DNA of 64,000 nucleotides, from the NCBI RefSeq assembly GCF_006345805.1, contig NC_043003.1, forward strand, positions 61,938,001 through 62,002,000. The letters are read 5' to 3'. Source of the DNA: Octopus sinensis (Eukaryota). Below are positions 305-60,050 of the stretch, one piece after another; position 1 is the stretch's first letter, and every line of letters begins with the position of its first letter. Below the pieces are notes generated by a model. It saw only the letters and a program-made list of their open reading frames with translations. It did not search any database and had not been told where the DNA came from. A program made the translations under genes and the position numbers.

Positions 305-1504
305 GTAATTTTAATTTTATGATTTAAGAAAATACTATCTTTATGTTGTATATATTTTTCTTGTAATTCAATGTTGCTATGCAACATATAAAGCAGAAGT
401 AATTCTCATGAGAATTTAGCTAGAACTTTAGGGTACACATTCATTTGTTGTTCTGTAGTTTGGTGTTGTAGTGAAAAGATATCTGTCTAGCTCAAGAAAT
501 GATTATGCAGCATAGAGCTACCAATGAAAGAAACATGGACTTTTCAGTTCAACTACAGCTATCTTGAGGGTCTTGTTATAGATAAAAGGCAGTGATATTG
601 GAAATAGAAGGAAGGGTCTTTAACTGAAACTGGATATCTAATGGAACGGTGAGAATGTGTGGAAAGAAAACCTCTTTTCATCTGGCACAATCAGTCACAA
701 TAATGGCTTTCATCAGATGGTGCATAAGAATTTTGACAGCTAGTCTTATATTGTTACAGAGTTTTGGTGCAGTCAAGTTTAATAGCACATAATGGGTGCT
801 CCTACTTTCAATTGAAGGTTGTGAGGAATGGCTAGAATAGGCTGAAGGGAACTGAGATATTCTCTTAGACAGTAGGCAGTATTGTTAATGTCAGCTTCAG
901 TGTGAAGTAACTTGTACCATCTGGATTGGGCTGTTGACTGATGGTGCCACTAATATCTTGCACAATATTTTTGGCAACTAGACTGGCATGTTTAGAAAGC
1001 CACAAATAGTTTCTGTAGTTCCATGAGACTAGAATAAGCTCTCAGTATCATTTCAAGAAATGTGATTATAATTTACATATTTTTGTGTTTTTGACATCTC
1101 CAACACTTCTGTAGTTATGCCATAAATTTACTGAGTGAGTGAGTACTGTTAGATGAATGAAGGATACAAAGATCAATTAAGCATAACATACCAGAAAATT
1201 TACACATATTGGGCATCAAATGAGTAAATATCAGTTAGGAGAGAAAGATTAAGGTGAAAGACAATCGTAAACTGATGTACTTCATATTTAACATACCTCC
1301 TCAACTACTACTCCAATACAGCTATCAGTCTACATCTTTTTTTATTAACTCATCCTTATTTTATTCCAGTAGGATGTTGGATTCTTTTTGTTCATGTCTT
1401 ACTGTGGGTTGCATCTTGACCTCCGTGAGAAATCTTGTAAAGATTTGCTGCAAAATAGAGACTTTCTTTCAAGACAGACAGACAGACATTGACACTTATA
1501 TGTA

Positions 1505-1729
1505 TACACCAAGTGGGTGCTGAAAAGTTTCTGGCCTTAAGGGTATCGTGAAAGGCCTGGTTGGAAGCCCAACTTTCTGAGTTCTTTTACAGGGCTTAGA
1601 AAAACTGAAGGATTGCTGCAATAAGTGTGTGAATCTGAGAGGTAAATATGTTGAATAAAATCATTATTAACTGATCCTCCTGTATTGTCTTTTACCCAAA
1701 ACCCTGAACTTTTCAGCACCCTTTTCATA
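1505..1729 (+). mobile_element. Mariner-derived MITE
   Basis: Imperfect TIRs gggtgctgaaaagttt / aacttttcagcaccc with TA flanks. Internal remnant KKLKDCCNKCVNLRGKYVE* resembles a mariner transposase C-terminus. Confidence 0.7.
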
Positions 1730-2013: not shown

Positions 2014-2127
2014 GTGTGATATTCTAAGAAAAATAGAAAATATCATATTAAAAATTTTGAAGTCACTTGAAAAGGGAATTATGCCTTCATTTGAATACGC
2101 TAATCATTCTTCATGGGATAATATCAA
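2014..2127 (+). CDS. SPO11: SPO11 internal coding exon (equivalent to human exon 2, 114 nt, phase 2/2)
   Basis: Acceptor taattattttcag|G at 2013/2014. Translation CDILRKIENIILKILKSLEKGIMPSFEYANHSSWDNI(K) aligns by eye with human SEVLASIENIIQDIITSLARNEAPAFTIDNRSSWENIK. Length is 114 nt if the donor is AA|gcaagt at 2128. Confidence 0.93.
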
Positions 2128-2419
2128 GCAAGTATTTTCATTATGTATTTTTTAATAAAATATCATTTTCATTTTTTGCATTATTGTTTGCTAATGAAAG
2201 CATGAAAAAATTACTTTAAATCCACAGATGATGCAAAATTGATAACCAGAAGTCAAGTTTTTATAATTGCTAAAATTTTAAAGCAGTTTTGATGTTCATT
2301 ATCTGTTATGTATTTTCAGTTTCATTTTTTGAATGAATTCTCTTTCAGTCTCTCTTTCCTAGCTCTTTTATAGTTATACATAAATCAATCTACCCACACA
2401 CATGCTTACCTAGACATAT

Positions 2420-3240: not shown

Positions 3241-3248
3241 AGTAGTAA

Positions 3249-3310
<62 letters not shown>

Positions 3311-3500: not shown

Positions 3501-5714
3501 TGCTGCCTTAATAATAATGATACTGGTTTCTGGTTTAAGTACAAAGCTAACAATTTTGAAGGTAGGGTGGGGAGTAGTTCATATCATCAACTCCAATACA
3601 TGATTGATGCTTTGTTTTATCAACTCTGGATGGATGAAATGTAAAATTAGATTTCCACAAAATTTGAACTTAGAATGTAAAGTGTTGGAACTAATACTGC
3701 AAGCTGTTTTTTTTTCCCAATACACTAATGATTTTGCTAATGCTCACACACACATACATGCACATTCAAATACACCCACACAAAGATACAAATATCTTTA
3801 TATGTTAACCCACATGTCTGCACAGGCACACACATAAACAAAATTTAAATATGTAAATGAAAAAATAGTTCTCTTGTTAGCTTTAATGAAGATTACTGCA
3901 ACAGCTTTTTTATGACTAGCAGAGCTATTGACTAACTGAAATCCTGTGTAAGTGACAATTGTATGAACACTTGTGTATTTAATATATTTTGAAGGTGGGA
4001 TAAGATTGTATATTTGAATTACAATCTACCTGACAGGCTTTCACCTGTTTATCATCTTCTGACTTTCTTCAAAAGGTTGATCTTAAGCTATGTCAGAAGG
4101 TGAGTATTAAACAGTGGGATTAGACCTGAGCACCTTATGATTATGAAGCAAATTTCATGACCATTTGGCCATGCTTTGTCCTTATCTATTTGTCTGTTTA
4201 TGCATAGACAAGATTGCAGAAATTAACAATCTGCTTAGTGATAATACTAATTTCTCAGGATTCAGAAAGACAACACTGCTCAATTAAAAGTTAAAATTAA
4301 ATCAATTTCTGCTTCAAACAAACAATATGATCTACTCCATTTCTCCACATTGAAGAATTCACTTGAGCGTATATTTATGGAACAGTGAAAATGCACTAAC
4401 AGTACAGTTTTCTATTCAATAATTTTACAAACATACACACCAACACATCCGATTGCTAAACATTACATAACATTATCAACAATAAACACCAGTGAGATAC
4501 AGCATATGTTTATCTGATAGGTTCCTGGGGATCTTAAATGGTATAAACCAAATAGGCAATATATCTACCTTACAACTGAAAAGAGGAAAATAGAAATTAA
4601 TTCTGAGAGAAAATAATATCATTAGATTAGTTGGGAATGGTAATAAGTTTGGTTTTGAATTTTAGTGATGTGCCAAAAGTTATAATCATATACAATATAA
4701 CAATAGAAACTTTGAAATATTTTATTAATTAATCATATTTTAGTTTTTGATTACAATTGAATGATTATTCAGTATAAACATTTGGTTTTGGCATATCATA
4801 TGTATATAATTTAAAATAATATATGAACAAATTGAAAACAATTCCTGATTAATTATTTTAATTGTCTAGCTTCGAAAATCAATCAGGCCTGCTTTATCTC
4901 TCAAGCACTTACTTCCACCAAAGAATTTTAATTTCTGTTTAATTAGCTACTGTGTTGAGTTCAAATCAGGCTGAAGCTGACTTAGCCTTATCTACAGTCT
5001 GAGTACTGCAAAGATCTATAACATAGTGAATTTCAATCCATTAGATGTAGAACTACTGTCAAACATGGTTACTCTTTTTTTTTTTAACAATTTAAATAAA
5101 GAGTTCACATGATAAATTGTATGTTTATACTCAATATCAAATGATGATCAATGCATAGAAAGATATGAAATTAATATACTGAAGGAAAGAAGCACTTATT
5201 CATGTAAATTAGTTTTTTTAGAGCACTAAATGTTTCCATTATTTGATTCCAAACTCGCAATGGATGCTAAGTTTTGTTTGCTTTTTTATCAAACTGAAAC
5301 CAATGATATTTTTTGTTCATTATGAATAGTCTTAAATAATGACTAGTTATGTAGTTCAGAAACTAATTTGTATTTAGAAAGTTATTTGAATTATGATTTC
5401 TTTTATAACAAGTCTTTCGTTATTCATTTAGGTAAGAGAGCCTTGCAGTTATGATGTTAAAGAAATTAGAAGTTGCTCTGTTTAATATTTTCATAAGTTG
5501 TTTACATAGGAAGTCTGTTTCAACAACTCAAAGAAACAGCCATGGATCTCAAGAAATTAGCACTTCATCAAATGTCTATTGTTCTAATACTGAAAATAGG
5601 AAAAAGTTTACACTGTACTATAGTACTAAAGGATTTTAGCCAATACAGCATATATAGACAGATATGAACACCTTGCATTATATTCAATATTTTTGTGGAC
5701 AAAGTCAAGAAAAA

Positions 5715-7287
5715 GAAATTCACCTTCAAAATAAGCGCAACTATGCCTCCCCTGGTCTCGATGGAGTTACATACCTGCTTCTCAAACGTGGCAGGCACTT
5801 CCTTTTACACCAGCTTTCTATTTTCTTCCAGTACTGTCTCAACAATGGTGCTACTCCGGAGCAGTGGAAAACTGCCAGTGTCATTCCTCTGTTCAAAAAG
5901 GGCGACCGCACATCACCTGTCAACTATCGCCCAGTCAGTCTCACTAGCTGTATTGCAAAACTGATGGAATCGTGTGTCAGAGAAACACTCTGGAACTTCT
6001 GGAGCTCTCACAGTCTCATCCGACCCTCACAATATGGATTTGTCCCTAACTCCAGCTGCAGTGACCAGCTTGTCGAGTTCCTTGAGGACATTACTCAGAT
6101 TACTGACAGTGGCTCATGGGTGGATGTTGTCTACCTTGACTTTGCTAAGGCTTTCAACTCTGTGCCACACAAAAGGCTTATGGTGAAACTCTCTGCAATG
6201 GGTGTGGGGGAGACCTTTTTAACTGGTTGAAATCCTTCATCCTCAGCCGAAAGGAGGTAGTCACAGTTCTAGGACAGCACTCTACACCATATGAGATGTC
6301 ATCGGGTGTACCACAGGATCTGTCCTTGGTCCCCTCTTGTTTGTGGCATACATTAACGACATAGATGCCAATTTAAAGAATGCCACAGTATTGAAATATG
6401 CAGACGACATCAAGCTGTACCTTGAAATCAAGAGGACAGATCCTGATGTCTACAACTCTTTCCTGCAATCAGACCTAGACACAATGCAGCAATGGATCAC
6501 AGACTGGCAACTGAAACTGGCTGTGGACAAGTGTACCACCATGCATTTTGGGAGAAAAAACCCTGCGTTCACTTACTCCCTCCACAACACTGATATCAAG
6601 AAATCCTCTTGCGAGCGTGACCTAGGCATCACTGTCAGCAGTGATTTGCGTTGGTCAAAGCATATCTCTAAGATTGTCAGGAAGGCCGAGGGTGTCTTGG
6701 CATCACTCAGCAGGTCTTTTGTTAGCCGCTCTCCAGCCATCTATTTAAAACTGTATACAGCTATGGTACGACCACACTTGGAATTCGCATCATCAGTTTG
6801 GAACCCCTATCTTGCACAGAACATTGACCTCCTGGAATCTGTCCAGAGACGTGCAACCAAACGCATACCCTCCATCAGACACCTACCATATTCTGAGCGC
6901 CTTGTTTCCCTGGGCATGGATTCACTGAAGCTCCGGCGTTTGGCGACGGACTTGGTAAACACCCACAAAGTTATCAACCACCTCACCAACAACAACACTG
7001 AACACCTTTTTGATCTCCATGTGTCTAACACACGTGGACATGCCTACAAAGTCAGAAAACAATACAGCTCCCATGACTTTCGGAAACATTTTTTCACGCT
7101 CAGAGTTGCTGAAGCATGGAATAAACTGCCTGCGTCAGTTGTTGACTGCCATGACACTGCATCTTTTAAGGCCCTCATGCTTTCCGAAATCCGCCGAAAC
7201 TACACCTGATTATATATACACTTTAGATGAGTTGTAGTGCACCTGAGCACTGTACACAATTATTATTATTATTATTATTATTATTAT
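5715..7287 (+). mobile_element. 5'-truncated CR1-clade LINE: ORF2 reverse transcriptase with two -1 frameshifts, 3' stem-loop and (ATT)n tail
   Basis: Motifs SPGLDG, PEQWKTASVIPLFKKGDRTSPVNYRPVSLTS, QYGF, DVVYLDFAKAFNSVPH, GVPQ(G)SVLGPLLF, YADD, RPHLEFASSVWNPY, TRGH, RVAEAWNKLP. Stop at 7209, AGTGC-ACCTGA-GCACT hairpin at 7236-7251, (ATT)n about 7258-7287. Confidence 0.96.
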
Positions 7288-45122: not shown

Positions 45123-45472
45123 TATCCGTTGCCAACGCCGCCCCGACTGGCCTCCGTGCCGGTGGCACGTAAAAAGCACCATCCAATTGTGGCCATTGCC
45201 AGCCTCGTCTGGCCCCCGTGCCGGTGGCACGTAAAAAGCATCATCCGATCGTGGCTGTTTGCCAGCCTCGTTTGACACCTGTGCAGGTGGCACGTAAAAA
45301 GCACCCACTACACTCACAGAGTGGTTGGTGTTAGGAAGGGCATCCAGCTGTAGAAACACTGCCAGATCGGACTGGGCCTGGCACAGCCTACTGGCTCCCC
45401 AGACCCCAGTTGAACCGTCCAAGCCATGCTAGCATGGAAAACGGACGTTTTACAATGCTGATGATGATGATG
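45123..45472 (+). mobile_element. Young-looking RTE 3' UTR with 3 tandem GCCGGTGGCACGTAAAAAGCACC-type units and (GAT)n tail
   Basis: Units at about 45157, 45218 and 45282, then the conserved ggaagggcatccagctgtagaaac and tail. Confidence 0.88.
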
Positions 45473-52370: not shown

Positions 52371-53558
52371 GAATGTCTTCCTTGCCACTAGTGAGTCTAA
52401 CTGAAACAACTTTTCTTGCACAAAACTCACATCCATTCACTATGGTTATGGTTATATCATTCCAGTTATCTTGCCAGACATAACTGCCATTGTAGCAAAG
52501 CTGACAGTTGCAAACCTGAAATTTTAAATGTGAAAGAGAGAGAGCCGTTACTGGTGCTAGTCTAATTTCTCATATAATATGATATATATATTGCACTATA
52601 GCAAGTAATGCTATAATGCATTTATAAGATAGCGTTCCTATGTAAATTTTGAATTATAATTTAATAATTCTGGCTTTTACTTATGTTGAAAAAGAATTGA
52701 TTATTTAGTTTGCAAAAATTATTTTAACAGACGTTAAAAGTAGCATAAATTTTTTGTTACATCAGTAGACACCATATTGATTTATACATTCAAAAGACTG
52801 AAAATCACTCTAGAGATTAAAAATCAGTTTGGATAAAATATGTAACCATTTATGCAAAATAAGTGAGATACAAGAGAGCCTTCAATGGTCACTCCACTTG
52901 CCTCAAATAGCAACTGAATTACCTTTAAACCATGCTCATTCTTCAAAAGGAAGGACACAGGTATTGTAGGGATCACAAATATGAAAAAAGATGGAATACT
53001 TATGGTTGGAACACCTTTGATTATAAGTCTTCTCAACTGAAGTTCACATGGAGCTGAGCCATAAGCAGGATAGTTTCTAAAGTTATATTCAGTATACTTT
53101 CTAATATAGAAGGTACTTGTTAATTTAATCCTTATCCTTGTTTCTTATGAAATTCCTCACAAATAGATTTGAACTTAAAATCCTCATTCACTTTGTGATT
53201 TCACATCTACTTTTATCAATCATAAGAATAGCAAATATATTATAATTAAAGATAGCTTTAGGTGCTCATAGCAATTATTAAATGTTCAGCCTTATAGAAA
53301 TATAAGAAAATTATATTATACATGGTCCTATGGGGCCCCTGGGTCAAGATGCTGCAGCAGTCAACACACTTACCCAAAGATAGTTCTAGTTATCATGTCA
53401 AAAGTATTAACTACTTACATACCAACAATAAATAACAACTTTTGCACAATTTTATGGATAACTAAACACACACACATACTAGCATTATTTATATATGATT
53501 ATAAAAAATATGATATTGATATCTTTTTAATTATCAAGGATATTTGTTAAATTTTCAG

Positions 53559-53647
53559 GTTCTCAGTGGAGTTTGGATTAGAAACGATTATGGAACCGAA
53601 AACTTCAAAAATATCTTTTGGTTCGAAAAGATCAAGAAAAAAATTTG
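53559..53647 (+). CDS. SPO11: SPO11 internal coding exon (equivalent to human exon 3, 89 nt)
   Basis: Splice sites aaattttcag|G...TTTG|gtaatt. Translation (K)FSVEFGLETIMEPKTSKISFGSKRSRKKF vs human KFEDSVGLQMVSHCTTRKIKSDSPKSAQKF. Length 89 nt; phases join correctly to both neighbouring exons (AA|G = Lys, G|AT = Asp). Confidence 0.88.
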
Positions 53648-58777: not shown

Positions 58778-58897
58778 AATATGTATATATCAATATGCTT
58801 ATATATACATATAATGTCTAAATATGTATATATCAATATGCTTATATATACATATAATGTCTAAATATGTATATATCAATACGCTTATAATGTCTAA
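58778..58897. repeat. 43-bp minisatellite, 2 identical copies plus one shortened copy
   Basis: aatatgtatatatcaatatgcttatatatacatataatgtcta starts at 58778, 58821 and (deleted form) 58864. Confidence 0.92.

Positions 58898-59889: not shown

Positions 59890-59930
<41 letters not shown>
59890..59930. repeat. (TA)n microsatellite about 55 nt upstream of SPO11 exon 4
   Basis: Directly visible. Confidence 0.95.
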
Positions 59931-59936
<6 letters not shown>

Positions 59937-59983: not shown

Positions 59984-60050
59984 ATCTGTTATTAAAGTTA
60001 CTGGCAATTATATACCAGCTTGTTCAAACTGATGCTTACAGAACTAAAAG
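59984..60050 (+). CDS. SPO11: SPO11 internal coding exon (equivalent to human exon 4, 67 nt; ends just before the RDxYY catalytic-Tyr motif)
   Basis: Splice sites gtttttattacag|AT...AAAAG|gtattt. Translation (D)LLLKLLAIIYQLVQTDAYRTK(R) vs human SLILKILSMIYKLVQSNTYATKR. Length 67 nt. Confidence 0.95.

Follow-up and report, generated by a model that had tools for sequence, protein, structure and literature searches.

A probably constitutive, compensated GC–AG intron after the conserved second coding exon of SPO11 in Octopus sinensis

Introns of the U2-type GC–AG class, with the donor consensus AG/GCAAGT (slashes within sequences mark splice junctions throughout), make up ~0.8% of introns in mammalian protein-coding genes (PMC7242645), and ~10% of genes contain one. 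The remaining positions of these donors are closer to consensus than usual, in compensation for the C at +2 (PMC2490688), and GC donors in general are over-represented on alternatively spliced exons (PMC2490688, PMC7242645). For exon 10 of C. elegans let-2, developmental regulation of splicing that needs the C at +2 was shown experimentally (PMC2490688). In GYNNGY delta-4 tandem donors, splicing at the downstream GY lengthens the exon by 4 nt, shifts the reading frame and creates a predicted NMD substrate (PMC4267661, PMC8055015, PMC2423196); alternative use was recorded for 0.65% of ~122,000 human and 0.83% of ~124,000 mouse donors of this type (PMC4267661), which the authors put down largely to noise, a smaller share being regulated through NMD (PMC4267661; PMC8055015). 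In mammalian SPO11, exon 2 is skipped in the SPO11-alpha isoform, and TOP6BL binding in mouse depends on the exon 2 sequence (PMC11922745; PMC12203943); the alpha/beta pair is treated as a mammalian feature in a recent review (PMC12203943).

The second coding exon of SPO11 in Octopus sinensis shares features with each of these systems. Like members of the GC–AG class, its downstream intron has GC at +1/+2, AG at the 3′ end and near-consensus positions from +3 to +8 (PMC2490688). The class consensus has G at −1, whereas the octopus donor has A, and human GC–AG introns tend to be shorter than GT–AG introns (PMC7242645), whereas the octopus intron, which is known here from gene models, extends over 51.4 kb. 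Its first six nucleotides, GCAAGT at 2128–2133, form a GYNNGY motif whose downstream GY would lengthen the exon by 4 nt, with the frameshift and predicted NMD outcome of the delta-4 tandem donors. However, the alternatively spliced GYNNGY subset yields transcripts from both sites, and the octopus downstream site appears only in an old gene model of a sister species, where it is joined to a different exon. As in let-2, the GC donor lies on an exon whose inclusion is in principle regulatable, but the regulation of let-2 rests on experiment, whereas the octopus GC donor is known here from sequence and models.

The window, a 64,000-nt stretch of AT-rich animal DNA, was confirmed as Octopus sinensis sequence and covers the 5′ part of the SPO11 gene of this species, exon 1 being located upstream of it. 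The features that bear on the donor are as follows.

1994–2013, + strand: 3′ end of intron 1, a pyrimidine/AT-rich tract followed by the AG acceptor (ATAAGTATAATTATTTTCAG/); the exon 2 acceptor reads ATTTTCAG/ at 2006–2013
2014–2127, + strand: SPO11 coding exon 2, 114 nt, 38 codons, phase 2 at both ends, translated as (R)CDILRKIENIILKILKSLEKGIMPSFEYANHSSWDNIK
2128–2135, + strand: GC donor of intron 2, /GCAAGTAT, with CAA at −3 to −1 and GC at 2128–2129; the sequence directly 3′ of exon 2 is GCAAGTATTTTC
2132–2133, + strand: GT at donor positions +5/+6, which forms GYNNGY with 2128–2129 and was called a competing donor in the initial annotation
2128–53558, + strand: intron 2, 51,431 nt, GC–AG, containing transposon debris; its acceptor, GATATTTGTTAAATTTTCAG/ at 53539–53558, is an AG after a pyrimidine-rich tract
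53559–53647, + strand: SPO11 coding exon 3, 89 nt, acceptor AAATTTTCAG/, donor TTG/GTAATT, translated as (K)FSVEFGLETIMEPKTSKISFGSKRSRKKF
59984–60050, + strand: SPO11 coding exon 4, 67 nt, acceptor TTATTACAG/, donor AAG/GTATTT, translated as DLLLKLLAIIYQLVQTDAYRTK(R)

A tblastn search with a human SPO11 query, which served only as a lead, matched exon 2 (49% identity, E 1.6e-5) as well as 53559–53647 and 59984–60050. For identification of the protein, the 90-aa product of exons 2–4 joined at the GC (...SWDNIKFSVEFGLETIMEPKTSKISFGSKRSRKKFDLLLKLLAIIYQLVQTDAYRTKR) was used as the query in an exhaustive HMMER search, followed by a word-indexed search. It matched a 359-aa protein, SPO11-like isoform X2 of O. 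sinensis, with 100% identity over all 90 residues, corresponding to residues 57–146 of this RefSeq protein. Isoform X1 (XP_036360700) has 407 aa with TP6A_N and Toprim domains, and the presence of PF04406 and PF21180 in the O. sinensis SPO11-like protein places it in the SPO11/TopoVI-A family. The O. sinensis gene has an annotated range of ~757 kb for the 407-aa protein, intron 2 alone taking up 51.4 kb; the homologous SPO11 genes of bivalves, limpet, monkey and mouse span 7–21 kb.

Joins across exons 2–4 were rebuilt by script for each possible donor. The join at 2127/2128 gave ...SWDNIK/FSVEFGL... and stayed open through exon 4. Joining at the +4 GT (2131/2132) lengthened the exon to 118 nt and shifted the frame, which then read ...NIKQVLSGVWIRNDYGTENFKNIFWFEKIKKKI up to a TGA stop split between two exons, with TG at the end of exon 3 and A at the start of exon 4. 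Among the GT and GC dinucleotides within 2090–2175 (at 2099, 2128, 2132 and 2145), the frame was open only with 2128, and the conserved W-x-N-[IV]-x/F motif and the frame were given together only by the GC join. The initial annotation had described the GC donor of exon 2 as obligate, since only 2128 gives an in-frame 114-nt exon, had placed the TG/A of the 118-nt form exactly at the exon 3/4 junction, and had regarded this form as a likely NMD target and exon 2 skipping as frame-preserving. Its description of the sequence was accurate in every detail: the recomputed joins reproduced both exon lengths and the split stop codon, the full-length protein requires the GC donor, the +4 product would be frameshifted, its premature stop lying upstream of many exon junctions, and the frame stays open when exon 2 is skipped.

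Several other arrangements were tried and rejected. Alternative starts of exon 3 that would rescue the GT donor (53557, 53560 and 53563) lack an AG directly before them; the second AG at 53565–53566, taken as the exon 3 acceptor, leads on the GT donor to TAG after 5 codons. A U12-type intron does not fit, as there is no /RTATCCTT or ATCC-type donor and the acceptor is AG; reading ATATCAAG at 2121 as a U12-type donor would give a 107-nt out-of-frame exon, and the AC acceptor it requires is absent.

The strength of the two sites was scored by matches to the U1-complementary consensus CAG/GTAAGTAT and by a crude duplex energy in a forced register. The GC site CAA/GCAAGTAT matched U1 at 9 of 11 positions, six of them contiguous at +3 to +8 (−2.7 kcal/mol by the crude estimate), whereas the +4 site CAA/GTATTTTC in its own register matched at 6 of 11 (+1.2 kcal/mol by the same crude estimate). 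The GT donors of the homologous exon in five other species matched at 6–7 of 11 positions, and the octopus site was the best U1 match among all exon 2 donors compared. In a simple position-independent reckoning from consensus frequencies, the penalty for C at +2 (~7 bits) would be close to the penalty that the +4 site pays at its own +4/+5, and therefore the sequence alone leaves room for some use of the +4 site. The initial annotation had called the GC donor weak, a description that does not hold apart from the C at +2, given a U1 match above that of the GT donors of all five other species. Its competing GT is simply the +5G/+6T of the compensating consensus, and it is not a special feature, because GY occupies +5/+6 in ~47–52% of human constitutive donors owing to the consensus itself (PMC2423196).

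The homologous exon 2 donor was then read in the SPO11 genes of five other animals, the boundaries being located with degenerate DNA patterns. Mammals were represented by Rhinopithecus roxellana and Mus pahari, standing in for human and Mus musculus, and cephalopod genomic donors by Octopus only.

Mercenaria mercenaria: exon of 114 nt, donor GTAAG/GTGGGT
Mytilus galloprovincialis: exon of 126 nt, donor ATAAG/GTACCA
Patella vulgata: exon of 123 nt, donor GTCAG/GTTAAC
Rhinopithecus roxellana: exon of 114 nt, donor ATAAA/GTAGGC
Mus pahari: exon of 114 nt, donor ATAAC/GTGGGC

In all five the intron lies after the second base of the codon following W-x-[ND]-[IV], at the same position and in the same phase as in octopus. 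In six of six lineages the exon begins and ends in phase 2 and its length is divisible by 3; octopus, clam, monkey and mouse share a length of exactly 114 nt. GC was found at the homologous donor in 0 of 5 species (two bivalves, one gastropod, one primate and one mouse species), every one of which has GT. The GC would thus be a lineage-specific substitution, because the homologous donor is GT in all five other species, and it is Octopus-specific among the species sampled (O. sinensis directly and O. bimaculoides by inference). The initial annotation had raised the possibility that the GC donor is ancestral to bilaterians and had left open whether the mammalian donor is GC as well; both mammals sampled have GT, and the boundary alignment across metazoans that it proposed returned a shared position and phase with GC in none of the five. 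For the taxa sampled, the sequences compared refute a GC donor of ancestral origin.

In a transcript contig from a more distantly related cephalopod (Logan SRR8281693), the junction of exons 2 and 3 falls at the codon position seen in octopus (...ATC AG/A TTT...); being cDNA, it bears on the exon join and not on the donor dinucleotide. After exons 1–3 this contig continues at 520–926 into repetitive sequence instead of exon 4 (...KF/NLTYQLDVSAKK...), and it is an aberrant or chimeric splice product.

Octopus exon 2 aligns column for column with the 38 aa that are absent from mouse SPO11-alpha, which supports its identification as the homologue of mammalian SPO11 exon 2; the mammalian facts cited in the initial annotation, skipping of exon 2 in alpha and TOP6BL binding, hold as well (PMC11922745, PMC12203943). 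The exon of octopus and mammals has the same intron positions and phases and the same length of 114 nt. The donors differ: those of the mammals are GT and weak (AAA/GTAGGC and AAC/GTGGGC, with a G-run next to the site), whereas the octopus donor is GC with strong flanks. An exon-2-skipped isoform exists in mammals, whereas none is on record for octopus. To judge from the gene structures compared, the frame-preserving exon 2 cassette is ancient, and the structural precondition for an alpha-type isoform is older than mammals, which the GC donor is not. Since the mammalian donors are GT, the mammalian mechanism is separate from the GC feature of octopus.

The only recorded use of the +4 GT is in a 2015-era O. 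bimaculoides gene model, UPI00071E0A56, which reads NIKQ/AFTCLSSSDFLQKVDLKLCQK and in this way enters a 63-nt cryptic exon of intron 2.

4037–4099, + strand: cryptic exon, 63 nt, acceptor CTGACAG/, near-perfect donor AAG/GTGAGTAT

The translation of this cryptic exon is 100% identical to the tail of UPI00071E0A56. The exon is open both in the +4 frame and in the frame of the GC donor, where it would insert LSPVYHLLTFFKRLILSYVRR. In the 2015 O. bimaculoides annotation the gene was split into the +4/cryptic fragment, a read-through fragment and a 3′ model (XP_014774383), presumably because gene prediction failed at a GC donor that precedes a 51-kb intron. Recursive splicing through the cryptic exon at 4037 was set aside by reasoning only, as CAA/GCTTTC would not rebuild a usable donor.

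The window also carries repeats. In intron 2, two adjacent open reading frames at 5664–7209 (+ strand) match Pfam RVT_1 with E values of 1e-13 and 1e-9, and this segment is, to judge from these matches, a decayed non-LTR (LINE) retrotransposon in the orientation of the gene. A (TAG)n microsatellite of ~70 nt occupies 3241–3310, and tandem repeats with units of 62 nt and 43 nt lie at 45140–45305 and 58778–58889, respectively. An (AT)n run at 59890–59932 precedes the exon 4 acceptor by ~50 nt. Just upstream of exon 2, the sequence at ~1500–1640 (+ strand) resembles, by eye only, the C terminus of a mariner-type transposase (...LKDCCNKCVNLRGKYVE).

All five RefSeq SPO11 isoforms of the two Octopus species (XP_036360700 (X1), X2 and XP_036360702 (X3) of O. 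sinensis, and XP_052825732 and XP_052825733 (X1 and X2) from the newer annotation of O. bimaculoides) keep exon 2 and the NIK/FSVEFGL join, and they differ from one another in the Toprim region and at the 3′ end. At the level of annotation, neither exon 2 skipping nor the +4 site is used in any of these five isoforms. Exact look-up in a collection of 15 billion proteins, a weak negative in that only exact full-length matches count, did not find the exon-2-skipped products (on the X1 and X2 backgrounds), the +4 donor/exon 3 and intron read-through products, the two forms of the +4 donor/cryptic exon product, or the GC donor/cryptic exon product. Among the molluscan hits examined, none was an isoform without exon 2, and a literature search returned no paper linking SPO11 with GC–AG introns in animals. 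An alpha/beta-type or NMD switch in a mollusc, as proposed in the initial annotation, thus had no counterpart among the five RefSeq isoforms of two Octopus species or the exact products searched, and nothing was found that showed the GC donor acting as a switch. SPO11 is germline-restricted, and sampling of meiotic stages may be absent from the RNA-seq used for annotation.

We consider it quite probable that this is an ordinary, lineage-specific, compensated U2-type GC–AG intron that is spliced constitutively, with the +4 GT inert or used at noise level. A T-to-C change at intron position +2 would have arisen in the lineage leading to Octopus, and it would be tolerated because the other intronic donor positions, +3 to +8 (AAGTAT), and −3/−2 can pair with the 5′ end of U1 snRNA. 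The register of U1 binding would place cleavage at 2127/2128, and an occasional cut at the +4 site would amount to splicing noise, giving an mRNA with a frameshift and a stop at the exon 3/4 junction that is expected to be removed by NMD. Constitutive use of the GC is inferred from the gene models, and any use of the +4 site would be at noise level.

The contrary view is that T-to-C at +2 was fixed in octopuses for a regulatable exon 2 or donor choice, as a switch between GC and +4 sites or between inclusion and skipping in meiosis, and this seems unlikely. In its skipping form, the GC donor would weaken exon definition and lead to alpha/beta-type exon 2 skipping in octopus meiosis. The exact homology of the exon with the mammalian cassette is consistent with this, as are its length divisible by 3 and its flanking phase 2 introns in six lineages, the open frame of the skipped join and the 51-kb intron that the exon faces downstream; GC donors are moreover enriched in alternatively spliced genes, and GC is required in C. 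elegans let-2 (PMC2490688). However, 0 of 5 RefSeq isoforms from the two Octopus species skip the exon although the annotation includes alternative events of other kinds, the 15-billion-protein collection contains no exact match to the skipped products, and the molluscan hits examined include no isoform without the exon. Mammals, moreover, skip it with the weak GT donors AAA/GTAGGC and AAC/GTGGGC, which indicates that GC is neither necessary nor shared, the octopus donor is the best U1 match of those compared, and alpha/beta is treated as a mammalian feature (PMC12203943). Skipping driven by the GC donor is decidedly unlikely on this balance.

A very small probability attaches to a regulated GYNNGY tandem donor coupled to NMD, in which germ cells would shift between the GC and the +4 GT and thereby tune SPO11 dosage. 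The GYNNGY motif and the premature stop are both present, the old O. bimaculoides model uses the +4 GT, about 20% of alternatively used human GYNNGY sites are regulated, mostly via NMD (PMC4267661), and in RAD9A, a DNA-damage gene of human, mRNAs of both forms arise from a GC/GT tandem donor (PMC2423196). Yet any alternative use at GYNNGY sites is below 1%, regulated pairs have sites that are alike whereas those compared here match U1 at 9 and 6 of 11 positions, the +4/exon 3 join occurs in no current RefSeq isoform and no catalogued protein, and the +4/cryptic exon join of the old model is expected from a predictor that disallows GC donors. The chance that the C at +2 is a sequencing or assembly error or a rare allele, with GT as the true donor at 2128–2129, is negligible. 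A single-base T/C difference would suffice, but at this position K-Q (AAR CAR) is encoded in the independently sequenced O. bimaculoides: its read-through model A0A0L8H9U7 (NIKQVFSLCIF-stop) requires G-C-A at +1 to +3, which argues against a sequencing error, and the RefSeq models of both Octopus species are built across the GC junction. The GC reported in the initial annotation thus agrees with the O. bimaculoides model, and O. bimaculoides probably has the GC donor too.

On present evidence, the locus adds one more compensated GC–AG intron, whose GC join the RefSeq models of both octopus species already contain. Its practical value lies in annotation, as predictors that forbid GC donors break the SPO11 gene, as in the 2015 O. 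bimaculoides models. If regulated use in cephalopods were true, it would represent convergent regulation of a DSB-forming enzyme, and a regulatable octopus GC would be an independently evolved counterpart of mammalian alpha/beta on a bilaterian-conserved 114-nt cassette.

Two further isoform differences, both encoded outside the window, were noted in the Octopus SPO11 proteins. A 346-aa isoform, O. sinensis X3 and O. bimaculoides X2, ends in a shared alternative tail (...PSDIK/SWKFSWSRNKKQNYKA) and lacks the C-terminal ~70 residues. O. sinensis X2 drops a 47–48-aa block of the Toprim domain that contains the glutamate (...VVEKDATFQ...; NTKSG/KGFPD), and the same block is dropped in Ruditapes philippinarum X3 (TQMG/KGFPD) and in Lissotriton helveticus X11 and X5 (CYSTG/KGVPD). 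The isoform lacking the Toprim glutamate looks recurrent across bilaterians and is presumably catalytically dead, and it may deserve more attention than the GC donor.
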